Shown here: positions 3,461 through 16,084 of the stretch, piece after piece
How positions within the stretch are numbered: position 1 is the first letter of the stretch
How the letters are laid out: each line of letters opens with the position of its first letter
Notes under the pieces: model-generated
Told to the model about the DNA's origin: nothing
Seen by the model: the letters and a program-made list of their open reading frames with translations, nothing else
Databases searched by the model: none
Program-made: the position numbers and the translations under genes
Origin: Obrimoposthia wandeli
Lineage: Eukaryota
DNA length: 64,000 nucleotides
Direction of reading: 5' to 3'
NCBI GenBank assembly: GCA_977020255.1
Contig: CDROCS010002814.1
Location: 1 to 64,000 of the forward strand

Positions 3461-6427
3461 ATGTCAGAGCTGTTGTCATTAAAAATTTCAAAAATATTCA
3501 AGCTTCCATTACATATACATATTGCGACTATGTTTATCCTTTTAACTTTAGCTCTGGGCTTTATTCAGGTTTGGTTTAACTATCAAAAGAACTCGGAGCT
3601 AATTAAGGAAAACTCTATTGTCCAGTATGAAAAAGTAATGCAGCGCGCCACTATGGATTTATCAGCTAAGTACCATCTTGCTGCTATGAGTGTCGAAATA
3701 ATGGCCCAAACCGAGCTGCCATTAGCAAAAACACTGGAAGAGCGTTTAAAATTTATACCTGTTTTGAATACGATTCTTGTTGGCAATAAGGCAGTAAGTG
3801 GCTTTGAAATTGGATATAAAAATGGTGATTTTTTTATTATACGAGTAATTGATTCAGAGTATATGCGTAAACAGTTTAACGCTCCTCCTAATGCAGCATA
3901 TTCAGTTGATGATATAAAAGCACCAAGTAACCCTGAGATAAACAGCAGTACAAGAGTCTATTACGATAAATATTTAAGTGAACTTAAACGCGTAAAGTTA
4001 AAGGGCATGACATACGACCCAAGGATAAGGCCCTGGTATAAGCTGGCATTAAAAACAGATGGTTATGCAACAACGGAGCCTTACTTATATTATTTTGTTA
4101 AAAAAGTAGGTTTATCGATTACCCTTGAAACTAAAATTGAAGGAGTAGTTATTGCAGCAGATATAGAACTGGATGATATATCTTCTATTTTAAAAGAAAA
4201 CATTATTACCCCATCATCTGAGTTAGTTTTGTTTGCTGAGAACGGTAAAGTTATTGCCTATAAAGACCCCGAAAAGTTAATTATAATGAATAGGCAAGGT
4301 GATAATAAAATAGCTGAAATTGGTGATCTACAAAGCAGTATTTTGAAAACTCATAACCATTTAATACAAGCTAAAGAACAACGAATTGATTTTGAATTTT
4401 CAAGTGAGCACTGGGGTGGTGCTGTTAGAAAATTTGACATTTATAAAGACTTTAAGGTTTTCTTTGCATTTATAGCCCCTGACAATGAATTGTTCTCTAG
4501 AGCAATAGAAATTCGCTGGCAGTCTAGCCTTGTGGCTTTAATGTTAATGTTAATAGCAGTCCTAATTGCTGGTTGCACCGCTTATTTAATAGCTAAGCCT
4601 ATTAGGCGTTTAACTTTACAAACTCGAAAAATTCGTCAGTTTGACTTTTCTTCAAGTTCAGTAGAGAAATCTGTTATCTCAGAAATTTCTATACTCTCTA
4701 GAAATATGGACGATATGAAATTGACCATAAGTCACTTCTTGACGATGATTAATTCACTTGCAGGAGAGGAAAATTTAGATTCACTACTTACCACTATTAC
4801 TCAGCAAACCCTAGAAGTTAGTAACGCAGATGCTGCAGTTTTATTTTTGCTGGATGAAGAGAGTGCCCACATCACTCCAGTTAGTGTAAAAATAGCGACT
4901 GAAATTGATGGTGAAATTTCCCTAACATCATGTGAGGTTGCGAATAATAAAAATTTCATTCTTGAATCTCTTGAACAAGGAGTACCTAAAGTTCATAAAT
5001 TCACAAAATGTGATGATGGATATAAATATATATTAGAGCCGTTTTTTGACAAATTCAAGACACAAAACCTGCAAGCCTTAACTTTGCCTTTGACTAACCG
5101 ATCTGGAGTTATTCAAGGAGTGCTATGTGTTATTAACGATTTTGATAATGAAAATACAGAGGACTTAGCGAATGAAGATAGAGTTAGTTTTATGCAAACT
5201 TTGTCTGGCTTCGCTGCCGTGTCGATGGAAAGTAGGTACTTATTAAAAAGCCAAGAAGACTTGGTGGCATCCATTGTACAATTAATAGCAGGATCTATTG
5301 ACGCGAAGTCTCATTATACAGCAGGGCATTGCAAAAGAGTTCCAGAAATCACAACAATGTTAGCAAAAGAAGCCTGCAGACAACAAGAAGGGGAGTTCAA
5401 AGAGTTCTCTTTAAATAAAGAAGAATGGGCAGAACTAGAAATAGCAGCTTGGCTACATGATTGTGGAAAAATAACAACACCTGAATATGTAGTGGATAAG
5501 GCGACCAAGCTAGAAACAATATATGATCGTATTCATGAAGTTAGAATGCGCTTTGAAGTACTCAAATGCAGCGCAGAAATAGAGTATTGGAAGTCTATAG
5601 CTGAAGGTGAAGATTTAAAAGCGATGAAAAAGATTTGGGATGAAAAAATCGTGGTAATAGATGATGATTTTGCTTTTGTTGCTCGTTGTAATGTTGGAAG
5701 TGAATTCATGTCCAGTGTTGATATGCATCGTATACAGGAAATATCTTCGGTTACTTGGAAAAGAACCTTAGATGATAGAGTGGGTATTTCTTGGGAAGAA
5801 AACGCTAGAAAAGGGAAAGTTCAAAAATCAAAACTACCGATAATGGAACCGCTCTTCGCTGATAAAATTGAACATATTATTGAAAGGCACCCTAAGGATG
5901 TGCTCACTGAGGACAACCCATGGGGATTTAATATGGAGTGTCCCGAACATCAGTATAACCGTGGAGAGATTTATAATCTTTGTATTAGTAAAGGCACTTT
6001 AAATACGGAGGAAAGATATAAAATTAATGAGCATATGGTGCAAACAATTATTATGCTTGATTCATTAAAATTACCTACAATGTTAAGTAATGTAACTGAG
6101 ATTGCAGGCGGGCACCATGAGAAGATGGATGGAACAGGCTTCCCCAAACGATTAAAAAGGGAGGAAATGTCAATTCAAGCTAGAATGATGGCTATTGCTG
6201 ATATTTTTGAAGCATTAACCGCTGCCGATAGACCTTATAAAAATGCAAAAAAACTCAGTGAGACAATTCAAATCATGAGCTTTATGAAAGCAGATAATCA
6301 TATTGATAGCGCCTTATTTGACCTATTTCTCAAAAGTGGTGTTTATTTAGAATACGCCAAGAAATACTTACCATCAGATCAGGTAGACTTTGTTGATATC
6401 AGCCATTATTTGAGTACTGTAGATTAA
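3461..6427 (+). CDS. Membrane sensor HD-GYP c-di-GMP phosphodiesterase (Cache-type periplasmic domain, HAMP, GAF, HD-GYP)
   Basis: Two TM segments flank a periplasmic domain with YDPRIRPWY (Cache). HAMP-like KPIRRL, GAF-like LPLTNRSGVIQGVL, then GHCKRV, WLHDCGK, HHEKMDGTGFP and AIADIFEALT. Confidence 0.93.
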   Translation: MSELLSLKISKIFKLPLHIHIATMFILLTLALGFIQVWFNYQKNSELIKENSIVQYEKVMQRATMDLSAKYHLAAMSVEIMAQTELPLAKTLEERLKFIPVLNTILVGNKAVSGFEIGYKNGDFFIIRVIDSEYMRKQFNAPPNAAYSVDDIKAPSNPEINSSTRVYYDKYLSELKRVKLKGMTYDPRIRPWYKLALKTDGYATTEPYLYYFVKKVGLSITLETKIEGVVIAADIELDDISSILKENIITPSSELVLFAENGKVIAYKDPEKLIIMNRQGDNKIAEIGDLQSSILKTHNHLIQAKEQRIDFEFSSEHWGGAVRKFDIYKDFKVFFAFIAPDNELFSRAIEIRWQSSLVALMLMLIAVLIAGCTAYLIAKPIRRLTLQTRKIRQFDFSSSSVEKSVISEISILSRNMDDMKLTISHFLTMINSLAGEENLDSLLTTITQQTLEVSNADAAVLFLLDEESAHITPVSVKIATEIDGEISLTSCEVANNKNFILESLEQGVPKVHKFTKCDDGYKYILEPFFDKFKTQNLQALTLPLTNRSGVIQGVLCVINDFDNENTEDLANEDRVSFMQTLSGFAAVSMESRYLLKSQEDLVASIVQLIAGSIDAKSHYTAGHCKRVPEITTMLAKEACRQQEGEFKEFSLNKEEWAELEIAAWLHDCGKITTPEYVVDKATKLETIYDRIHEVRMRFEVLKCSAEIEYWKSIAEGEDLKAMKKIWDEKIVVIDDDFAFVARCNVGSEFMSSVDMHRIQEISSVTWKRTLDDRVGISWEENARKGKVQKSKLPIMEPLFADKIEHIIERHPKDVLTEDNPWGFNMECPEHQYNRGEIYNLCISKGTLNTEERYKINEHMVQTIIMLDSLKLPTMLSNVTEIAGGHHEKMDGTGFPKRLKREEMSIQARMMAIADIFEALTAADRPYKNAKKLSETIQIMSFMKADNHIDSALFDLFLKSGVYLEYAKKYLPSDQVDFVDISHYLSTVD

Positions 6428-7200: not shown

Positions 7201-8481
7201 ATGTTGAAGAATAAATTAAAAATATATGCAGAGCTTGACCTTGATGCTGTTTTCGAAGAATTTTATGATTCTATGCTGTCAAATCCTGATTTTTCAGTCT
7301 TCTTTAAAGATCAAGAACAAATCAAATCTCTGGTAAATCGCCAGAAAAAATTCTTGCTAGAAACAATGGAATCAGATGATGAAGTCATAAAGCAGCGCTA
7401 TATCGCTTTAGGGGAAATGCATCATAGCATTAGTGTCCCTTATATTGATTTCATGGCGGGTATGGGGATTCTTGAGCGGGGGATTATCCATTCGATCGTT
7501 CTGCAAAATACGCAGCGCGGTTTATTAGACTATTCATTTCAATTTTTCCATCACATCAGAGCTTTTACCGCTAAAGGTTATCTCAACAAAATGCTGTGCG
7601 ATGATATTGCTGATATAGATCTTTATCTTTCACATGTTAAGCGTGCCACAGAAATTGATACTCTGCTCGCGACTGAACGCATCATCTGGCTGAAAGATAT
7701 TTTACGTTCGATTAAGGTTGGAAATCGTTCTGCTGCACCTTCATTTAGTATGCCAGAAGGAATTGCCAATCAAATTAGTGCTGCTACTAAAGATGACCCA
7801 GTGTTAACGAGATATACTGATGATATTTCTACTCGTATGGAGATAAACGCTAGAAACCTTTTCTTCTTTCTTGAGAAAGAGAGCTATGAAGAGGTTTTAC
7901 CGCTTTACCGAGAGCTGATGAGCATTTATAAGCTGACGCTAATGCTCACTAGTGTAGTAACCATTGCATCGACTAACACTATTGTAGAAACTCTCTCGCA
8001 CGATAAGCTGACAGGGCTATTAACGCGACGAACCTACGAATCAATCATGAGCAAGGCGCTTGAGGTTGCAACGACTGAAGAATATGAGTTGTCGTTTGTT
8101 ATGGTTGATATAGATAGTTTTAAGCGTATCAATGATCAATATGGGCATGCTACAGGTGATGAAGTATTGAGTGGAATTGCGAATATACTTGCCAGTTCTA
8201 TACGCGCCACAGATTACGCATTTAGATTAGGTGGTGATGAGTTCTTGCTTTTATTGAAGGGCGCTCCATATTCGGTTGCTAATATGCTATCAGAGCAGAT
8301 ACGTAAGCAAATTGAAGGTTTGAGTTTTACAGCCAGTAATCAAGACGTTTTTTCAGTAACTGCCAGTTTTGGTATCTCTTGTTTCGTGCCCCCATTTGAT
8401 CAGCCTGTTTCAGAAATGGTGGCTGCAAGTGATAAAAATCTTTATCTGTCGAAAGAGAGAGGCCGAAATATCGTGAGCTAA
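7201..8481 (+). CDS. Globin-coupled diguanylate cyclase (N-terminal sensor globin, C-terminal GGDEF)
   Basis: The N-terminus has a protoglobin-like pattern (FEEFYDSML...FF...LGEMHHSISVP). The C-terminus has DKLTGLLTRR, DIDSFKRINDQYGHATGD, an RxxD I-site (RATD) and RLGGDEF. Confidence 0.85.
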   Translation: MLKNKLKIYAELDLDAVFEEFYDSMLSNPDFSVFFKDQEQIKSLVNRQKKFLLETMESDDEVIKQRYIALGEMHHSISVPYIDFMAGMGILERGIIHSIVLQNTQRGLLDYSFQFFHHIRAFTAKGYLNKMLCDDIADIDLYLSHVKRATEIDTLLATERIIWLKDILRSIKVGNRSAAPSFSMPEGIANQISAATKDDPVLTRYTDDISTRMEINARNLFFFLEKESYEEVLPLYRELMSIYKLTLMLTSVVTIASTNTIVETLSHDKLTGLLTRRTYESIMSKALEVATTEEYELSFVMVDIDSFKRINDQYGHATGDEVLSGIANILASSIRATDYAFRLGGDEFLLLLKGAPYSVANMLSEQIRKQIEGLSFTASNQDVFSVTASFGISCFVPPFDQPVSEMVAASDKNLYLSKERGRNIVS

Positions 8482-8569
8482 GCACGAAATGAAAAATCCG
8501 AATTAGTTGTATTTATTAAAGCATAGAAGACATTTCACTCGATATAGCACAGATCAAAGCGCTATTGTA

Positions 8570-8760
8570 TGTTCTGGTCACTCCAGTCGGGCATATTTCT
8601 AAAAGAACTTACAAATTCAATGGGCAATTGATCATAGTTAGCTGAGGGCAGTGGCTAATATTGTAATGTTTCATATATCTAGCCACATCATCGCGCATAT
8701 GAGAACACGAGAGCATGATATTAGTTCAGTCTGTGTTCAAAATATGGTGCGTTAACCTCG
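8570..8760 (-). mobile_element. IS3-family remnant (right end plus decayed transposase C-terminus)
   Basis: The minus strand reads HMRDDVARYMKHYN and, after a frameshift, LPSANYDQLPIEFVSSFRNMPDWS. This resembles IS3 OrfB ends (HMKQDVAAYMKYYNLERLHTANGDLSPIEYE). It terminates in TGACCAGAACA, an IS3-type ...CA end at 8570. Confidence 0.7.
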
Positions 8761-9334
8761 GCTGATCTAATTAAGGTTTTATCGTAAACATCATATAGCT
8801 TAATGCATTTAGTTTTGCAGATGAGAATATTCAGTATGTTTGCGACCTTTATAAAATGCATAAAAACGTGCTGAAGTTAGACAAGTTAAATGAGTTTTAA
8901 AAACCAGCTTATTTAGGTTCATAATTAGTTTGCGATAAAATTCTTACTATGGCCTAGCCAGCTATATACAGACAACCGAGATAGAAGGCTTTTTGAAAAA
9001 CATAAAATTGAATTTTTGAACTCAGTCATTGACATTTTACAAGTGAATTAGAGGAGACAATGAAATCTGTTCATAAAGGAGTTATTCCTCATCAAGTTAT
9101 CTTAGAAGTTCTAAAAGCCAAATTCTTGCTACCGCCAGTTAAGCATCATCCAACTTCGAATTAAACATACTATACGAACTTGTGGCACTCGGTTATCAGT
9201 TAATTTGATCCGTTTATAACAAATATTATCGTGATGCTGATTCCATCAGCACAATAATCTGTTTGGTATACATCAAGCAGAATAACTCTAACTTCCTCAG
9301 CTCACCATCAATTGATTTTACATACCTAAACTCT

Positions 9335-9367
9335 CTTAATATTTCTTTAAGAAACTTTCTTTATGCT
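9335..9367 (+). promoter_or_regulatory. OmpR-family (PmrA/QseB-type) direct-repeat box plus -10 element upstream of the hemolysin-like operon
   Basis: CTTAAT-N5-TTTAAG (9335-9351, 11-bp period) overlaps the -35 position relative to TATGCT (9362-9367). Confidence 0.55.
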
Positions 9368-9396
9368 GATTAACATCAACCATAGAGAGCATTCAT

Positions 9397-10080
9397 ATGT
9401 CAGCATTATTAGGAAGTTATCTAAAAGAGCCCGCCCATTCGCAAGTAATTGTTGTAGAGCAACGAGCGAATCAAGAAATTATTAGAAGCTTTACTAACTC
9501 AAGCTTTATGTCCGTTTATGGAGCAGATGTTAAAGATTTTTTGCCTCATTCGCTGGCGCTAATAGATCAAAAAAATCAGCTAAAAGCCACTATGGGTTAC
9601 CAATCAGCTGCCGAGCATTGTTTGTATTTAGAGCAGTATTTATCTAATCCAATAGAACAATGCATTGCCGAGCATCTTGATATAGATACTCCTCGTCGCA
9701 AGGATATTGTTGAAGTCGGAAATTTGGCATCGATCTCTTATGGAGGAACACTAAGATTAATTATTAACTTGGCGAATTATTTCAAGAATATAGGCTTTAA
9801 ATGGATGGTGATGACGGCTATCCCACAAGTTATTCGTGTTTTTCAAAAACTGGGTATTGAAACAGAGCTTGCAACTTTAACAAAAGCAAAAGCTGAAGCG
9901 GTTCGAAATTCAGAAAGTGATTGGGGTAACTATTACGAAAAACAGCCGTTTGTGGTTTGTGCAAACATACTAAATAGCGTCAATAGCTTAGAGAATAATG
10001 AGCTTATGAGAAAGATAATGCAGCATGTACAGCCGCCAGATAAAGACGTGAATTATCAGCTTTCATTGGGAGGGATCTAA
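9397..10080 (+). CDS. Thermostable hemolysin (delta-VPH-like) family protein, probably an acyltransferase-fold enzyme
   Basis: Family-like motifs LYLEQYLSNPIEQ, IVEVGNLAS and WMVMTA. First gene of the typical hemolysin/AMP ligase/TenA/SDR cluster. Confidence 0.82.
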   Translation: MSALLGSYLKEPAHSQVIVVEQRANQEIIRSFTNSSFMSVYGADVKDFLPHSLALIDQKNQLKATMGYQSAAEHCLYLEQYLSNPIEQCIAEHLDIDTPRRKDIVEVGNLASISYGGTLRLIINLANYFKNIGFKWMVMTAIPQVIRVFQKLGIETELATLTKAKAEAVRNSESDWGNYYEKQPFVVCANILNSVNSLENNELMRKIMQHVQPPDKDVNYQLSLGGI

Positions 10081-10081
10081 G

Positions 10082-11557
10082 ATGAGTAAATTACTGCAAC
10101 AGATAAATAAACAAGCACTAATAGCACCTTCTAGTATCGCGCTACAGGGTGAAGAAAGTTCTCTTTCATATAGTGGGCTCATTGATAGTATAAATAGTGT
10201 AGCGGCACAGTTATCAATGTTACAGGTGCGACATATTGGTATGTACTTGGACAATCAATTTGATTGGGTGGTGATTCAATTAGCGGCAATGCAAGCCAAA
10301 ATACCGGTCACTCCTATTCCGCTGTTTTTCAGTAAACAGCAAGTGACTCATACTTTAGCAAAAAGCCAAATAGATCTTCTATTTGTCATGGATCAGTCAC
10401 AGGTTGCCACGTTATCAGTCGCGCAAGTAGATTTATCAGATATCAGTGTCATGTGCTTTAAGTTGCATCGAGAATCAAAAGAACCTGCCTGGCCTCTAGA
10501 TACAGCTTTAGTGACTTATACCTCAGGAACAACCGCAGCTCCAAAAGGCGTATGTATTAGCTACAACCTAATCGATGATGTATGCCTATCGTTATATGAA
10601 AAAACTTGCGATATAGGCATTAGTCAACACTTTTGCCTTTTACCTTTATCAATTATGTTGGAAAACATCGCGGGGCTGTTTTTAGTGCTTTATAGCGGTG
10701 CAACAGCTGTGTTGCTGCCTGCAAAAACAAGAGGTTTAGCAGGCTCTCAAGGATTGGATCTAGTTGCGCTTAGCGCCCGCTTAAAACAATTTGAGCCGCA
10801 AAGTTTAATTTTAACTCCACAGTTATTAAAGGCATTAATTTATTTAAAGCAGCAAGGGAAAAGTTTTGATTATTTAAGGTTTATTGCGGTAGGTGGTGGT
10901 CGTGTGCCATCTGAATTGTTAGCCAGTGCACAGCAATATGGATTACCGGTCTACGAAGGGTATGGGTTGAGCGAATGTGGCTCTGTTGTGAGCCTAAATA
11001 CGCCAAATCAGATTAAATTCGGCAGTGTTGGTAAACCTTTAAAACATTGTAAGGTTTCAATAACAAGCTCAGGTGAATTATGTGTAGAAGGCGCTAGCAT
11101 GCTTGGCTATTTAGGAGAGAACCAAAGCGAGGAAGGTGCGGTTAATACTGGAGATTTAGCAGCAGTAGATAGTGACGGTTATCTACACATACAAGGACGA
11201 ACTAAAAGCGTACAAATTAATAGCTATGGGCGTAATTTTAATCCTGAGTGGATAGAGTCGCAAGTATGCGCAGCACCAGGAATAGTTCACTGTGCAGTGT
11301 TTGGAGATCAACGACCCTTTATCACCGCAGTGATAGAAACTTTACCCTTTGTAGAAGATGCTCAATTAGAGCAAATAATTCAACAGTTGAATGAGCAGCT
11401 ACCTGATTACGCAAGAATTAGGGCATGGATAAGACCTGCCATTCCCTTGGTACAACAAAACAATTTAATTACCAGTAACGGGCGGGTTAGACGCGCGGCA
11501 ATTTACACAAAATATCAAAGTGAAATAGATAATAAATACCTTACTTCAGAGACTTAG
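10082..11557 (+). CDS. AMP-binding (ANL superfamily) acyl-CoA synthetase-like ligase
   Basis: YTSGTTAAPKG P-loop, YEGYGLSE, TGDLA, GR hinge. The A10 region reads SNGRVRR. Confidence 0.92.
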   Translation: MSKLLQQINKQALIAPSSIALQGEESSLSYSGLIDSINSVAAQLSMLQVRHIGMYLDNQFDWVVIQLAAMQAKIPVTPIPLFFSKQQVTHTLAKSQIDLLFVMDQSQVATLSVAQVDLSDISVMCFKLHRESKEPAWPLDTALVTYTSGTTAAPKGVCISYNLIDDVCLSLYEKTCDIGISQHFCLLPLSIMLENIAGLFLVLYSGATAVLLPAKTRGLAGSQGLDLVALSARLKQFEPQSLILTPQLLKALIYLKQQGKSFDYLRFIAVGGGRVPSELLASAQQYGLPVYEGYGLSECGSVVSLNTPNQIKFGSVGKPLKHCKVSITSSGELCVEGASMLGYLGENQSEEGAVNTGDLAAVDSDGYLHIQGRTKSVQINSYGRNFNPEWIESQVCAAPGIVHCAVFGDQRPFITAVIETLPFVEDAQLEQIIQQLNEQLPDYARIRAWIRPAIPLVQQNNLITSNGRVRRAAIYTKYQSEIDNKYLTSET

Positions 11558-11613
11558 CCCAAAAAAGCATTTAAGTCTCAGACAATAATACTTATCAAAA
11601 GGAAGAAACAGTT

Positions 11614-12261
11614 ATGAGTTTTTTTAATGAATTACAGCAACAAACAGCCGCTGAGCAACAGGTATTTCTACAGCGTAAAATAATACAAGAAACATTGGCA
11701 GGAGAGGTGAGCCTTGAACGTTACCAGGCATTTTTAACTCAAGCTTATCATCATGTTAAACATACAGTTCCATTATTAATGGCCTGCGGCTCCCGGTTGC
11801 CTGCACGTCATCAATGGCTGCAAAAGCCGGTTGCGGAATACATTGATGAGGAAATTGGGCATGAACAGTGGATCTTATCTGATTTAAAACACTGCGGAGC
11901 TGATTCACTCGCCATCGAAAATAGCGCAGCTAATCAATATACGCAAATGATGCTCGCCTACGCTTATCATCAAATAGATCGTAATAACCCTCTGGCCTTT
12001 TTTGCAATGGTGCATGTGCTAGAAGGCACCAGTACGTCTCTTGCAACGGCAATCGCGGGTTTAGTACAGAACAAATTAAATTTACCGACTAAAGCATTTA
12101 GCTATTTGTTATCGCATGGCGATCTCGATATTGAGCATGTTAAGTTCTTTGAACTGTTGATGAACAAAGTAGTAGACCCACAAGATCAGCAAGACATTAT
12201 TGAAGCGACCAAAGTGTTTTATCATTTGTACGGGGAAGTACTAGATTCGGTAGCAGTGTAA
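11614..12261 (+). CDS. Heme-oxygenase-like diiron enzyme (TenA/PqqC/CADD superfamily)
   Basis: Helical protein with putative metal ligands DEEIGH, VLEG and HGDLDIEH (H-x3-D-x2-H, as in CADD). Confidence 0.82.
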   Translation: MSFFNELQQQTAAEQQVFLQRKIIQETLAGEVSLERYQAFLTQAYHHVKHTVPLLMACGSRLPARHQWLQKPVAEYIDEEIGHEQWILSDLKHCGADSLAIENSAANQYTQMMLAYAYHQIDRNNPLAFFAMVHVLEGTSTSLATAIAGLVQNKLNLPTKAFSYLLSHGDLDIEHVKFFELLMNKVVDPQDQQDIIEATKVFYHLYGEVLDSVAV

Positions 12262-13034
12262 TGAATGTTTTAATGACAGGAGCCAGTGGTGCAATCGGGC
12301 AGAAACTCGCCCAGTCCTTAGCAAAAGAGGGGCACAGCATATTACTTATTGTGCGTGAAGAAACAGTTGGCGAGACGTTACTGCAAAGCTTACAGCAAAA
12401 TGCCGATCAGCAACACTTGCTCATTGTTGCTGATATAAATCACCCTTCGTGCCGGCAGAAAATCGAACAGCACATAAAAGCGAAGCAGATTGATATGCTA
12501 ATTAATTTAGCAGGTATCAATCAGTTCGCACATTTCAATGAGCAAACGGACCAAGATGTCGAAAAGATTATCCAGACCAATGTAATCAGCGCAATGCTGC
12601 TTACAAAGCAATTATTAACACATTTTAGTGATCACCAAGAAGCAACTATTATCAATGTAGGCTCAACTTTAGGCGCTATAGGCCATCCAGGCTACGTAGC
12701 TTATTGCACGAGTAAATTTGCATTACGCGGGTTCAGCGAAGCCTTGGATCGAGAGCTCGCAGATAGGTCTATTCAAGTGAAATATTTCGCACCAAGAACA
12801 ACCCAGTCCTCGATTAACAGTGAGCAAGCGGTTGCAATGAATAAAACCCTAGGTAATACCGTGGATAGTGTTGAGCTAGTAGTGAATGAATTTATGTCTT
12901 TTATAAAAACACATCAAAAGCAACGTTATTTAGGTTGGCCTGAAAAATTATTTGTAAAAGTAAACGCTGTATTTCCATGCTTAGTGAGCATGGCTCTAAA
13001 AAGTAAACTAGCAAAAATAAAACAATATATTTGA
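12261..13034 (+). CDS. Short-chain dehydrogenase/reductase (SDR)
   Basis: TGASGAIG cofactor motif, NLAG, NVGS and catalytic YCTSK. The start overlaps the upstream stop (TAATG). Confidence 0.93.
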   Translation: MNVLMTGASGAIGQKLAQSLAKEGHSILLIVREETVGETLLQSLQQNADQQHLLIVADINHPSCRQKIEQHIKAKQIDMLINLAGINQFAHFNEQTDQDVEKIIQTNVISAMLLTKQLLTHFSDHQEATIINVGSTLGAIGHPGYVAYCTSKFALRGFSEALDRELADRSIQVKYFAPRTTQSSINSEQAVAMNKTLGNTVDSVELVVNEFMSFIKTHQKQRYLGWPEKLFVKVNAVFPCLVSMALKSKLAKIKQYI

Positions 13035-13154
13035 AATTAATTAACAACAGTCTGAACCATATTAAGCGTAAATACTTAATATCATGTAAGTGAAATATGA
13101 TTTAAGCAAGGCGTTTTACTAAGTGGTCCTATATTAAAAATTGAGGTAAAAAGC

Positions 13155-13799
13155 ATGAAAACTAAAACGATCATTGCAATATGTACATTAATGTCTATAA
13201 GTGTGCTTGGATCAGCTAACGACACTAGTATAGATGAAAAGAAATCAGTGTTACATTTGCAAAAACAATGGGCTAATATTAAGTATCAAACCCCTAAAAA
13301 AGAGCGTGAATTAGACTTTAAATGGCTATCAACAGAAGCCAGCCAAGCGTTAAATCTTTATCCTAACTCAACGGAACTTCTTATCTGGCAGGGAATTATT
13401 TTAAGTACCTATGCCGGTGAAAAAGGGGGGTTAGGAGCGTTGAGTATGGTAAAAAAAGCTAAGGTAATGTTTGAAAAAGCGTTAGATAAAAGCCCACAAG
13501 CCCTCCAAGGTTCGGCGTATACCAGCTTAGGTAGTTTATATTATCAAGTTCCCGGCTGGCCTCTTGGTTTTGGTAATGATAAAAAAGCAGAAAAATACTT
13601 ACTTCAAGCATTGAAGCTGAATCCTAACGGCATTGATAGTAATTTCTTTTATGGTGATTTTTTATTAGATCAAGGTCGTAAAAAACAAGCCAAAAAGGTT
13701 TTAATTAAAGCCTTACAAGCTCCGCTACGTGAAGATAGACCACTAGCAGATAAAGGCCGTAGGATAGAGATTCAAGCATTACTAAAAAAGCTTTCTTGA
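13155..13799 (+). CDS. Exported TPR-repeat protein
   Basis: N-terminal signal-peptide-like segment. TPR-like helices AYTSLGSLYYQVPGWPLGFG and KAEKYLLQALKLNPNGIDSNFFYGDFL. Confidence 0.8.
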   Translation: MKTKTIIAICTLMSISVLGSANDTSIDEKKSVLHLQKQWANIKYQTPKKERELDFKWLSTEASQALNLYPNSTELLIWQGIILSTYAGEKGGLGALSMVKKAKVMFEKALDKSPQALQGSAYTSLGSLYYQVPGWPLGFGNDKKAEKYLLQALKLNPNGIDSNFFYGDFLLDQGRKKQAKKVLIKALQAPLREDRPLADKGRRIEIQALLKKLS

Positions 13800-13809
13800 T
13801 AAAAGTAAC

Positions 13810-14003
13810 ACTGTTTAATAGAGATGAATTAGGCGGAGCCTAAATCATCAAGGGTAAATTCGGGCGTGAACTTGTTAATAGCCTATGTAACTAGAAATAC
13901 CCCGCTTCACGAAATGAAGGCGAGCCTAAGCGAGAGGGCTTGCCTCGGGGATCGTTATTCTGGTTAAGGTGAGTGCAACTTACCTTAGCCTTTAATAAAC
14001 AGT
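13810..14003. other. Structured GC-rich intergenic element with 14-bp imperfect terminal inverted repeats
   Basis: Ends ACTGTTTAATAGAG / CTTTAATAAACAGT (12/14 complementary). Hairpins at 13829-13843, a multi-stem at 13900-13950, and a 12-bp stem at 13962-13990. Confidence 0.5.
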
Positions 14004-14052
14004 TAATTGAAATATTTTGCTATAAATAGAACTATCAATGTAGGAAGCATAA

Positions 14053-14706
14053 GTGATTAAAGTATTATTGGTTGAAGATGATAAGCTGATAGGTCAAGGG
14101 GTTAAATTGAATTTACAGCTAAGAAATTATCAAATTGAGTGGGTACAAGACGGTGCCAATGCTTTAGCTAGCTTGAAGCAACTAGAGCCTGATTTAGTTA
14201 TTCTTGACTTAAATTTACCTAATGTCAGTGGTATGGAAATCCTTCGCCTTGCCCGATCACAAGGAATAACAACGCCTATATTAATACTAACAGCTAGAGA
14301 TGCAATTGAGGATCGAGTGACCGGGCTTGATAAAGGAGCGGATGATTATTTAGTGAAGCCATTTAGTATTGATGAACTTGATTCTAGATTAAAAGCTCTA
14401 CACAGGCGTTTTCACGGACGCAGCGAAGAGATCATCAATTTCCAAGAAATCAAAATAAATACGCAAGCGCGCCAGGTCTTCTTCCAAGGGGATTGTATTG
14501 AAACGAGTCGTAGAGAGTATGATTTACTCGCACTTTTTTTAGATAATGTAGGTAGGGTATTAAGTAGACGGCAAATAGAGGCGAGCTTGTATGAAGACGA
14601 TATTGAGAGTAATGCTTTGGAAGTGCATATTCATAATTTACGGAAAAAATTAGGTAAAAAATTGATTACAACCGTGAGAGGAGTCGGATACTTTGTTAAA
14701 GAATAA
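14053..14706 (+). CDS. OmpR-family response regulator, QseB/PmrA-like
   Basis: LLVEDD, phosphoacceptor LDLNLP, GADDYLVKPF, winged-helix EVHIHNLRKKLG and TVRGVGY. Confidence 0.95.
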   Translation: MIKVLLVEDDKLIGQGVKLNLQLRNYQIEWVQDGANALASLKQLEPDLVILDLNLPNVSGMEILRLARSQGITTPILILTARDAIEDRVTGLDKGADDYLVKPFSIDELDSRLKALHRRFHGRSEEIINFQEIKINTQARQVFFQGDCIETSRREYDLLALFLDNVGRVLSRRQIEASLYEDDIESNALEVHIHNLRKKLGKKLITTVRGVGYFVKE

Positions 14707-16084
14707 AGGGCAATCGATTTATCAATACCTATTAAAACGCATAATAGGTATCGTTGTTATTAGTGCGATTGTCATGATGACTAGTTCAATTTATTACCTT
14801 AATCATGAGACAGAAGAGGTTTTCGATGCATCTTTAATTCAAACCAGTTTTCTGGTTAAAGCCCTGCTGCCACCACAGTTGAATATTGGCTCTTTTGTTG
14901 TACCCAAAGATTTACGCTTCAATCAATTTGTTAATTCTGATAGTTACAATGTTACAAGTGGCGAAGAAGAGAATAACGAAAAGGTTAATAAATATGAAAA
15001 TGACTTGGCCATCATCTTACAAGACAAGCAGTTGAAAGTATTATTTTCTACGATTGATTCAGCAGTTGAACTTAACCTCATTCATGAAGGCTTTGATTAT
15101 TTTACAATAGCCGGAGAAGAATGGCGGGTATTGAGTCTTTTTGATAAAGATCGAAAAATTTGGATTTCAAGTTTGCACAAACGCGAAGTACGTGATGAAT
15201 TAAATTTATATATGATTTACTCAATATTACCCCCAATTATCGGGAGTACACTATTGCTATTGATGGCGACTTTGCTTGCCATCAAAAAAGGCTTACTTCC
15301 ATTAAAAAGAATCAGCCATGATTTGATTTCACGTGACCCAAATAATTTGGCTGCTATTTCAGAACATATGATGCCTAGCGAATTGAGGCAAATAGTGACT
15401 GCGCTAAACACTATGTTTACCAAAGTAGATACCACTCTTAACCGAGAGCGGCGTTTTACAGATGATGCGGCGCACGAACTGCGTACACCATTAACAGGAA
15501 TGCACTTGCAATTAAGCCTGTTAGAAAACAGCGAAGCCAAAAAGATGTTGGGGGAAGGCGTCGAAAGAATGATTCGTTTAGTCAATCAATTATTGCAATT
15601 GGTTAGATTAGAACCTAGTCAAAGCGACTTAATTACGACGCAAAGCTGTGATCTCAAGCAACTTTTAGCCAACTCTATTGCGGATAGTTATCCATTGGCG
15701 GTGCAAAAAAATATAGAAATTGAGCTTATTGCTGATACTTGTGTAAGTGTTAAAGGGAACTCCATTCTTATTGAAGTATTAGTTAAAAACTTGTTAGAGA
15801 ACGCGATTCATTACAGTATGGCAAATAACATTGAAGTTGTATTAAAAGCGGAAGCAAGCATTCATATTTTAATAGTAGATCACGGAATAGGGCTGTCTGA
15901 TATGGATAAAAAAAATGTATCTAGACGCTTTTACCGTGTGAACAAGAACGACGGACTAGGTTCTGGGCTCGGTCTCTCTATCGTCGATAATATTGTTGAA
16001 TTGCACCAATGGAAATGCAACATGTTAGATACGAAAAATGGCGGTTTAACGGTAGAAATAACGATGGGCAATACAAAATATTGA
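14693..16084 (+). CDS. Sensor histidine kinase, QseC/PmrB-like
   Basis: Two TM helices, H-box FTDDAAHELRTPL, N-box NLLENA, G-boxes DHGIG and GSGLGL. Overlaps the response regulator stop. Confidence 0.93.
   Translation: MLKNKGQSIYQYLLKRIIGIVVISAIVMMTSSIYYLNHETEEVFDASLIQTSFLVKALLPPQLNIGSFVVPKDLRFNQFVNSDSYNVTSGEEENNEKVNKYENDLAIILQDKQLKVLFSTIDSAVELNLIHEGFDYFTIAGEEWRVLSLFDKDRKIWISSLHKREVRDELNLYMIYSILPPIIGSTLLLLMATLLAIKKGLLPLKRISHDLISRDPNNLAAISEHMMPSELRQIVTALNTMFTKVDTTLNRERRFTDDAAHELRTPLTGMHLQLSLLENSEAKKMLGEGVERMIRLVNQLLQLVRLEPSQSDLITTQSCDLKQLLANSIADSYPLAVQKNIEIELIADTCVSVKGNSILIEVLVKNLLENAIHYSMANNIEVVLKAEASIHILIVDHGIGLSDMDKKNVSRRFYRVNKNDGLGSGLGLSIVDNIVELHQWKCNMLDTKNGGLTVEITMGNTKY

Follow-up and report, generated by a model that had tools for sequence, protein, structure and literature searches.

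The two-component systems BqsRS (CarRS) and PmrAB of Pseudomonas aeruginosa pair an OmpR-family regulator that acts on a TTAAG-N6-TTAAG repeat over the -35 element with a kinase carrying an acidic periplasmic xExxE motif, and in both the cargo genes precede the regulator and kinase genes in an autoregulated operon, bqsPQ-bqsRS in one case and the spermidine-synthesis genes followed by pmrAB in the other (PMC4358008). The BqsR site, TTAAG(N)6TTAAG, overlaps the -35 and activates transcription; RExxE is needed for Fe(II) sensing by BqsRS, and HExxE has been named as the motif of the Fe(III)-sensing PmrB of Salmonella (PMC4358008). The outputs of both systems shield the cell surface from cations. 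Here we describe a cluster of seven genes at positions 9397-16084 of a 64,000-nucleotide stretch of DNA, referred to as the window (contig CDROCS010002814.1, positions 1 to 64,000, from the assembly GCA_977020255.1 filed under Obrimoposthia wandeli). It has the same kind of regulator, repeat and kinase motif and the same order of cargo before sensor; it differs in having HExxE rather than RExxE, in scoring below the PmrA/PmrB and QseB/QseC cut-offs and in carrying a different, five-gene cargo. The reading that we favour, with a confidence that reaches about the halfway mark, is that this cargo is a biosynthetic operon with a dedicated two-component switch and that it makes an amphiphilic, oxidised N-acyl compound.

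The seven open reading frames (ORFs) all lie on the + strand, at every position given for them by an earlier sequence-only reading of the window, and the Pfam and NCBIfam domain assignments agree with that reading for all seven. They encode a T_hemolysin family protein (9397-10080, 227 aa), an adenylate-forming (ANL) ligase (10082-11557, 491 aa), a haem-oxygenase-like diiron oxidase (HDO; 11614-12261, 215 aa), a classical short-chain dehydrogenase/reductase (SDR; 12261-13034, 257 aa), a predicted secreted tetratricopeptide repeat (TPR) protein resembling TatT and BstC (13155-13799, 214 aa), an OmpR-family response regulator of the PmrA/QseB/BqsR group (14053-14706, 217 aa) and a two-pass sensor histidine kinase (14693-16084, 463 aa). 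Read directly, the gap between the first two genes is 1 bp (TAA-G-ATG, 10078-10084), the ligase gene being translationally coupled to gene 1, and the HDO stop and SDR start overlap as TAATG (12259-12263). A regulator box, CTTAAT-ATTTC-TTTAAG (9335-9351, + strand), precedes the first gene. The arrangement described earlier, of same-strand genes, 1-bp gap, TAATG overlap and box, is thus read in the window in full.

One genome per species was scanned with a T_hemolysin peptide pattern, which gave 181 confirmed relatives, and the best 80 of these 181 loci were compared. The order T_hemolysin-ANL-HDO-SDR-TPR is found in ~70 of the 80, from Gamma-, Beta-, Zeta- and Alphaproteobacteria and a metagenome-assembled genome (MAG) of the Nitrospiraceae, and also on plasmids. 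A TPR orthologue is present in 76-77 loci and in essentially all complete ones; the 'hypothetical' fifth gene of the plasmid copies and the 'TatT component family protein' of Novosphingobium are both orthologues of the window TPR protein. When the loci were classed by a regulator/kinase pair after the TPR gene, 52 had one, 18 did not and 10 were cut by contig ends; that is, the pair adjoins the core in 52 of 70 assessable loci, and 18 of the 70, like the plasmid copies, have no kinase. The five genes stand without an adjacent sensor in Zetaproteobacteria, Solimonas, Steroidobacteraceae and the plasmids of Vibrio parahaemolyticus and Citrobacter freundii. The first of these two plasmids is conjugative and the second mobilizable, and both carry the core without the sensor pair (L081, L082). 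Judged by gene order, then, the core is taken to be five genes and the regulator/kinase pair a regulatory add-on. The grouping of the four enzymes into one conserved unit is borne out across classes, with the TPR gene included, and the surveyed clusters do not usually lack the TPR or two-component genes.

All seven genes, with perfect boxes, are present in Aeromonas caviae and in Pseudoalteromonas, which were fetched separately. The closest relatives of the window cluster are from Oceanospirillaceae/Neptuniibacter, among them one MAG contig with the same genes at 87-99% protein identity, and on this likeness the source organism of the cluster is assigned to the Oceanospirillaceae; an origin in Legionella, at first suggested by G+C and the box, proved wrong. 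At large, the T_hemolysin profile matches 2,237 clusters at 50% identity. In V. parahaemolyticus RIMD, VP1729 (thermostable hemolysin), VP1731 (iron-containing redox enzyme) and the two-component gene VP1735 have been named as associated (PMC10469919), so the species from which the family takes its name appears to share this neighbourhood. No paper describing the product, the cluster, the function of the V. parahaemolyticus locus tags or T_hemolysin as an acyltransferase was found in the literature, and searches there turned up no biochemistry of acyl transfer by the family either. By membership only broad families hold (PF12261, ANL, HDO, SDR and a TatT-like fold), and no specific named system does. 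The cluster is a real, conserved and unsolved system, for which the sequence-only reading is supported in part.

The box upstream of the first gene, with half-sites CTTAAT (9335-9340) and TTTAAG (9346-9351), is the candidate site of the adjacent OmpR-family regulator. A candidate -10 hexamer, TATGCT (9362-9367, + strand), read from the sequence rather than placed from a mapped start, begins 10 nt 3' of the box, and a 17-bp spacer puts the -35 position inside it. A consensus promoter scan found no canonical -35/-10 pair at the box promoter, as fits a promoter that depends on an activator. An exact TTAA-N7-TTAA (11-bp period) within 250 nt upstream of the first gene occurs in 37 of 51 sensor-bearing loci versus 0 of 18 sensor-less ones (Fisher 2.7e-8, a value that overstates the statistics, the loci not being phylogenetically independent). 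The other 14 sensor-bearing loci have 7-9 of 10 matches, 11 of them with 9-of-10 at the same distance, whereas in the sensor-less loci the best matches, at scattered positions, stop at 6-8 of 10. The V. parahaemolyticus plasmid copy has a 9-of-10 box and no sensor pair. The background rate is 0.008 per kb in the rest of the 1.37 Mb of loci, and those with more than 50% G+C (20 kb each, ~1 Mb) contain no other copy except a second upstream box in Thauera. The half-sites are fixed and the spacer varies among Oceanospirillaceae, Pseudomonas/Stutzerimonas, Polynucleobacter, Accumulibacter, Thauera, a Burkholderiales MAG and the Nitrospiraceae MAG, promoter G+C ranges over 26-72%, and the box at 9335-9351 is identical in the closest MAG. 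On these comparisons, the pattern across classes and promoter G+C is judged not to be due to chance. The co-occurrence of box and sensor pair makes it very probable that the operon is under direct control of the neighbouring regulator through the box, as had been proposed; the type and position of the box are those published for BqsR.

The sensor pair itself is less easily named. The best NCBIfam match of the regulator (Response_reg and Trans_reg_C domains) is PmrA, at 221 bits against a cut-off of 330, followed by QseB at 206 against 345, and the kinase (HisKA and HATPase_c) scores 224 bits for QseC against a cut-off of 475 and 173 for PmrB against 314. 'QseBC-like' can be kept as a best-hit label, but with all four scores under their cut-offs the two genes are not orthologues of QseB/QseC or PmrA/PmrB. 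The regulator is 43-51% identical to cluster-linked regulators of other classes. The periplasmic domain of the kinase (~140 aa) begins with HETEE, and of the 49 kinases linked to clusters, 43 have HExxE-x-[FY]-[DS]-A immediately behind the first membrane span; outside the HExxE segment the periplasmic domain is poorly conserved. As a link to metal sensing, the motif is suggestive. The gap between the TPR and regulator genes is 20-80 nt in most loci and 253 nt in the window, where it contains a weak second box-like repeat, TTAAT-N6-TTAAT (13992-14007, + strand; 46-61 nt 5' of the regulator gene), a possible internal autoregulatory site that is only partly conserved in the closest MAG. Since the gap is short in most loci, the regulator and kinase genes are probably read from the boxed first promoter, which would give positive autoregulation. 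Many Stutzerimonas loci (L030, L033, L038, L051, L074, L077 and others; ~7.8-9.8 kb) have a second, divergent regulator/kinase pair directly upstream, with a regulator ~35% identical to that of the cluster. A control for the specificity of HExxE that used this second pair was too crude to show specificity.

The first gene gives the cluster its misleading name. Its product matches PF12261 with E 1.6e-45 (155.5 bits against a gathering cut-off of 27), as do 17 of 17 aligned homologues, and an exact-sequence look-up of the window protein returned no match. The AlphaFold (AF2) model has a pLDDT of 89 and a pTM of 0.86. In a Foldseek search of PDB, its top matches are acyl-homoserine lactone (AHL) synthases and FeeM (TofI, FeeM, MesI, LasI, BjaI and EsaI, and also RpaI), with generic GNATs after them; matches to the AHL synthases and FeeM have E 2e-6 to 1e-4, target TM 0.6-0.7 and 9-12% identity. 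Invariant among the homologues are R101, E106-V-G-N-L110, W136, W176-G and Y179-Y180, and the IVEVGNLAS motif is the central strand that bears E106-V-G-N-L110. No signal peptide and no membrane or amphipathic segment is evident. On this model, the protein is related to LuxI and FeeM by fold and not by family membership: the structural side of a check of 9397-10080 gave the LuxI/FeeM fold, and the sequence profiles of Autoind_synth, FeeM and GNAT gave nothing.

Given this fold and the lack of an export signal or membrane segment, the T_hemolysin protein is far more likely to be a cytoplasmic acyltransferase than a toxin, and the sequence-only reading, which had taken it for an acyltransferase, fares well on the predicted structure. 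That the gene encodes a protein haemolysin or pore-forming toxin whose neighbours are unrelated is barely credible. For a toxin there speak only the Pfam name and the listings of virulence factors in Vibrio and Aeromonas genome papers; the absence of any signal peptide, amphipathic or membrane segment, the confident globular GNAT-like model, the translational coupling to a ligase gene and a five-gene synteny fixed across classes, free-living autotrophs included, all speak against one. The name itself could be explained otherwise. The founder of the family was, we take it, named for a haemolytic phenotype, and other N-acyltransferases received the label 'hemolysin' since their lipid products lyse red cells. 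By analogy, heat-stable haemolysis from a cloned gene would be as expected for a small amphiphile. CoA-dependent AHL synthases (BjaI, RpaI and MesI) are among the best structural matches, and the gene here has an acyl-activating ligase as its neighbour, which would suit a CoA-bound acyl donor. LuxI systems differ in having a LuxR-type receptor, which is not present here, and in matching the Autoind_synth/GNAT profiles.

Three further enzymes follow. The ANL ligase (PF00501 and PF23562; 148.5 bits for the AMP-binding domain against a cut-off of 29.9) has the core motifs TSGTTxxPK, GYGLSE, TGD and GRxK, near-invariant in 74 homologues, and at residues 465-471 the usual C-terminal G-K is replaced by a conserved G-R in 72 of the 74. 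Its nearest solved relatives, MenE, oxalyl-CoA and feruloyl-CoA synthetases, FadD13 and the A domains of nonribosomal peptide synthetases (NRPSs), are aryl and short- or medium-chain acyl-CoA ligases and NRPS adenylation domains. The HDO (Haem_oxygenas_2, PF14518; E 8e-28, 97.8 bits against a cut-off of 28.9) shows the strongest conservation in the cluster, with 45-60% identity between members from different classes, and its ligand set E79/E80-x2-H83, E137 and H168-x3-D172-x2-H175 is invariant in 74 homologues. It shares the haem-oxygenase-like fold and the conserved His/carboxylate metal site with CADD, UndA, SznF, BesC and PvfB/MboA; the characterised HDOs are only distant relatives, and no carrier domain is found in this cluster. 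Profile matches are to 3dde (9e-22), CADD (2e-5) and MboA (0.13, not significant), and 3dde, the closest solved relative, is a structural-genomics protein without known function. A CADD-type para-aminobenzoate synthase was tested for and failed, at 30 bits for TIGR04305 against a cut-off of 200. The SDR (adh_short; NF006565 at 295 bits against a cut-off of 238) has as its nearest solved structures a (3R)-hydroxyacyl-CoA dehydrogenase and 3-oxoacyl-acyl carrier protein reductases.

In Pseudoalteromonas (719 aa; L084 6522-8681) and in Novosphingobium (L085 6627-8663) the ANL and HDO genes are fused, which suggests that the two enzymes act in succession on one substrate. The pvf and mbo systems combine an HDO with a reductase and an enzyme for adenylation, a set that resembles the ANL, HDO and SDR found here. 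A PNPOx-like and radical-SAM (S-adenosylmethionine) gene pair is found inside the cluster of one Zetaproteobacteria MAG (L049 12105-13570), and in Thauera aromatica such a pair lies divergently upstream (L079 6579-8026), beside the second box near 8144-8158. It may be an oxygen-independent substitute for a step of the pathway.

The fifth product, the TPR protein, has TPR domains, a signal-peptide-like N-terminal segment and no lipobox. Its AF2 model (pLDDT 91) has as top natural Foldseek matches the transporter 8g52, of the TPR-protein-associated tripartite ATP-independent periplasmic (TRAP) type (TPAT), BstC (7t1s) and TatT (3u64/4di3), with query TM 0.62-0.71. BstC of Methylococcus, which is described as a sterol transporter protein, is also its best natural sequence match (profile E 1.6e-9). 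Against the Pfam family TAtT the window protein scores 15.4 bits, below the cut-off of 26.5, and 7 of 14 orthologues match at E<=1. TatT of Treponema pallidum and BstC are, as T components of TPATs, periplasmic TPR proteins as well, and some orthologues are annotated as TatT family. They differ from the present case in that no adjacent genes for TRAP membrane or binding proteins are found here, no TRAP transporter genes being present in the window cluster or the surveyed loci, and in that the TPR protein here, at 214 aa, is shorter. On the model, it would be a TatT/BstC-like periplasmic binder of hydrophobic ligands. The earlier suggestion that it serves as a periplasmic co-sensor finds no support: it persists where the kinase is missing, in 18 loci and on the plasmids, and its distribution follows that of the enzymes. 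In Pseudoalteromonas (L084 9565-10102), the TPR gene matches in two adjoining pieces with no annotated coding sequence, and it may be disrupted once.

Expression of a homologous cluster has been recorded in Pseudomonas alcaligenes AVO110, where RS08440-RS08460 encode, consecutively, an AMP-binding protein, an iron-containing redox enzyme, an SDR, a TPR protein and a response regulator (PMC8304167). We equate these genes with the cluster by their order and annotation names, in comparison with the Aquipseudomonas alcaligenes loci. When washed cells grown in lysogeny broth (LB) were kept for 4 h in minimal medium conditioned by a fungus, the ANL, HDO, SDR, TPR and regulator genes were induced 389-, 373-, 318-, 107- and 38-fold, respectively (PMC8304167). 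Graded co-induction that includes the regulator fits a single autoregulated transcript. That cells responded after being washed and put into fresh medium is more readily explained by an environmental cue than by a signal of their own making. The authors state that the ligase gene of the cluster ('fadD') is the one picked up in an earlier mutant screen as necessary for survival on fungal exudates (PMC8304167); the paper on that screen gives the name 'fadD' only (PMC6344628).

A catabolic or salvage function, in which the TPR protein would capture an exogenous hydrophobic carboxylate, the ligase activate it, the HDO and SDR oxidise it and the two-component system sense the substrate, would agree with the published beta-oxidation annotation, the induction by fungal exudate and the statement on growth and survival of the ligase mutant (PMC8304167), with the membership of TatT proteins in uptake systems and with the resemblance of the SDR to hydroxyacyl-CoA dehydrogenases. 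We nevertheless consider it very unlikely. The conserved core contains no membrane transporter, thiolase, hydratase or acyl-CoA dehydrogenase, its defining first gene has the fold of a synthase-type acyltransferase, and the cluster is kept in chemolithoautotrophic Zetaproteobacteria. The naming of the family founder, presumably for haemolysis as the Pfam name has it, likewise suits the making of an amphiphile and not its consumption.

What is shown for the favoured biosynthetic operon comprises its gene content, order and coupling, the predicted folds, the conservation of the box together with the sensor pair and a strong co-induction of homologous genes in one cultured species. Beyond this, we infer the substrates, the order of the reactions, the nature of the product and the cue of the kinase as follows. 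The ANL ligase would activate a carboxylate, most simply a fatty acid, to an acyl-AMP or acyl-CoA, whose chain would be oxidised by the diiron HDO and the SDR at the expense of O2 and NAD(P); in view of the SDR relatives and the ANL-HDO fusion, the simplest outcome would be a 3-hydroxy or 3-oxo acyl unit. The LuxI/FeeM-fold T_hemolysin protein would then move the acyl group onto an amine, forming an amide, and the amphiphilic N-acyl product would pass to the periplasm or outer membrane, bound or carried by the TatT/BstC-like TPR protein. In most beta- and gammaproteobacterial carriers, as here, a PmrA/BqsR-class regulator would bind TTAAK-N6-TTAAG over the -35 and turn on the whole unit, its own genes included, while a QseC/PmrB-class kinase would read a periplasmic cue, somewhat more likely one of cation, iron or envelope type than the product itself. 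With modest margins, we would order the possible roles of the product as envelope, then iron handling, then signalling.

A role in the envelope is hinted at by genes inserted in or lying near the cluster in individual lineages. An eptA-type phosphoethanolamine transferase gene lies between HDO and SDR in Solimonas marina (L042 12761-14413) and ~1.5 kb upstream of the cluster in two Polynucleobacter loci (L036 and L037, ~7.0-8.4 kb), and an outer-membrane barrel gene lies between SDR and TPR in three Zetaproteobacteria loci. Precedents for such a design exist. AlmEFG of Vibrio cholerae, under VprAB, is an ANL-type ligase plus acyltransferase system for envelope modification controlled by a PmrAB-like pair, and the ornithine-lipid and other aminolipid pathways combine OlsB/OlsA with iron-dependent lipid hydroxylases, some of their N-acyltransferases being annotated 'hemolysin'. 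The OlsB/OlsA and AlmEFG families are not detected here by sequence, so that the analogy is one of design only.

Other neighbouring genes could point toward metals. In Novosphingobium pentaromativorans pLA3 (L085 10109-14601), the core is followed, with 4-nt overlaps, by genes for a SAM methyltransferase, an extracytoplasmic function (ECF) sigma factor, FecR and a TonB-dependent receptor, and no regulator box is found upstream of the cluster. In Pseudoalteromonas, genes for a cupredoxin and an 'iron transporter' come directly after the kinase gene. The product could be an iron or metal amphiphile, that is, a lipophilic chelator or surface ligand such as an N-acyl-N-hydroxy compound formed by HDO N-oxygenation and acylation, induced through a PmrB/BqsS-like kinase on periplasmic iron and, in sphingomonads, sensed and imported by a TonB receptor. 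Besides these two sets of neighbours, this would agree with HExxE in 43 of 49 kinases together with a BqsR/PmrA-type box, with the many iron-oxidising Zetaproteobacteria among the best 80 loci and with the inclusion of N-oxygenase-type enzymes among the nearest characterised HDO relatives, where MboA is a weak match. We still regard it as quite improbable: the TonB-receptor link is seen in one lineage only, the MboA match is not significant, genes for a siderophore synthetase, exporter or reductase are missing, and a Fur-like site is not above its own background in 77 promoters, a result of little weight obtained with a single 19-base consensus. A classical siderophore cluster was also considered as a candidate and was set aside; TonB-receptor, FecR and ECF genes are found in Novosphingobium only among the compared loci.

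The sequence-only reading had the circuit possibly induced by its own product. Such an autoinducer circuit, in which a CoA-dependent, LuxI-like N-acyl signal is sensed by the adjacent kinase, perhaps via the TPR protein as in a binding-protein/kinase pair, with positive feedback through the box, we hold to be unlikely but by no means negligible. The best folds for T_hemolysin are AHL synthases, including the CoA-dependent BjaI, MesI and RpaI; synthase and sensor are adjacent in 52 of 70 loci, with the box ahead of the synthase; the Novosphingobium enzymes are coupled to an ECF sigma/FecR/TonB device, as if the product were sensed outside the cell; and the 9/10 box of the V. parahaemolyticus plasmid, which lacks a sensor, is compatible with control in trans. 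Set against these are the 18 of 70 loci, and the plasmids, that have enzymes and TPR protein but no kinase, the tracking of the enzymes rather than the kinase by the TPR protein, and a kinase periplasmic domain that is variable except for HExxE while the enzymes are well conserved (45-60% identity for the HDO). In addition, T_hemolysin has no membership in the LuxI sequence family, and washed P. alcaligenes cells in fresh medium showed induction of more than 300-fold within 4 h. The case for autoinduction is not stronger than that for a cation or envelope cue; because of the kinase-less core, the HExxE motif and the induction of P. alcaligenes on a shift of medium, an environmental cue fits at least as well. 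We also entertain, as a bolder and doubtful extension, that T_hemolysins are a large new LuxI-fold synthase family (~2,200 clusters) that, together with the ligase, diiron oxidase and SDR, turns free fatty acids into oxidised N-acyl signals of a new class. The TatT-like protein would pass such a signal on to a QseC-like kinase, the recipient in sphingomonads being a TonB receptor/FecR/ECF sigma device, and the circuit as a whole would be self-inducing. Were this true, the Vibrio and Aeromonas virulence factor 'delta-VPH thermostable hemolysin' would be the synthase of that signal.

Several points limit or weigh against the biosynthetic operon and switch that we favour. In the AT-rich window taken alone, TTAAK-N6-TTAAK occurs 3 times against 3.8 expected, which is not above chance; two of the three copies (9336 and 13992) lie in the two promoter-like gaps of the cluster. 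The loci behind the co-occurrence of box and sensor are, as said, related by descent. No sequence link to LuxI or GNAT was found for T_hemolysin in PDB sequence and profile searches or in Pfam at E<=10 with 17 members. The cluster contains no carrier protein, flippase or exporter, which leaves the route of the product to the TPR protein unexplained. The eptA gene and the outer-membrane barrel gene are each seen in no more than three loci; the ECF/FecR/TonB coupling in Novosphingobium speaks for a ligand sensed outside the cell and not for envelope stress; and HExxE may be a general feature of the kinase family rather than a metal site. Finally, the one study of expression assigns the genes to fatty-acid beta-oxidation (PMC8304167).

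On the 5' side of the cluster, ~915 nt (8482-9396) contain no ORF of at least 60 aa, and only the last ~140 nt of this gap are kept in the closest MAG; it is preceded by a globin-coupled GGDEF gene. The only Rfam match in the window is a tRNA; neither the 8482-9396 gap nor that between the TPR and regulator genes yielded an RNA element, and repeat and terminator scans of the cluster gave nothing above chance. On the 3' side follow an ORF without domain assignment and then creA. Farther upstream, a tRNA gene (1406-1479) is followed by a phage-integrase-family ORF (1849-2439, 196 aa), and an integrated island may have its edge here (1406-2439), upstream of the cluster. Between the integrase ORF and the GGDEF gene lies a gene for a 988-aa dCache and HD-GYP-type protein (3461-6427).

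The five-gene core is widespread (181 species-level genomes, 2,237 clusters), mobile on plasmids and present in organisms of very different lifestyles, and no described product was found for it. Re-reading T_hemolysin as a small-molecule synthase would change how 'hemolysin' hits are interpreted in Vibrio, Aeromonas and many environmental genomes. The HDO is a clean case of a haem-oxygenase-like diiron enzyme whose chemistry is unsolved and which is fused to its partner ligase in some lineages, and through the conserved box, the regulon of a PmrA/BqsR-class system can be predicted across different classes. Strong induction, together with the fitness effect given by the authors for a biocontrol Pseudomonas, indicates that the system is physiologically active. 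In its design, and by analogy, the cluster resembles the autoregulated cargo-plus-sensor operons of the PmrAB and BqsRS class and also acyl-amide synthase pathways of the LuxI and FeeM kind, with echoes of pvf and mbo.

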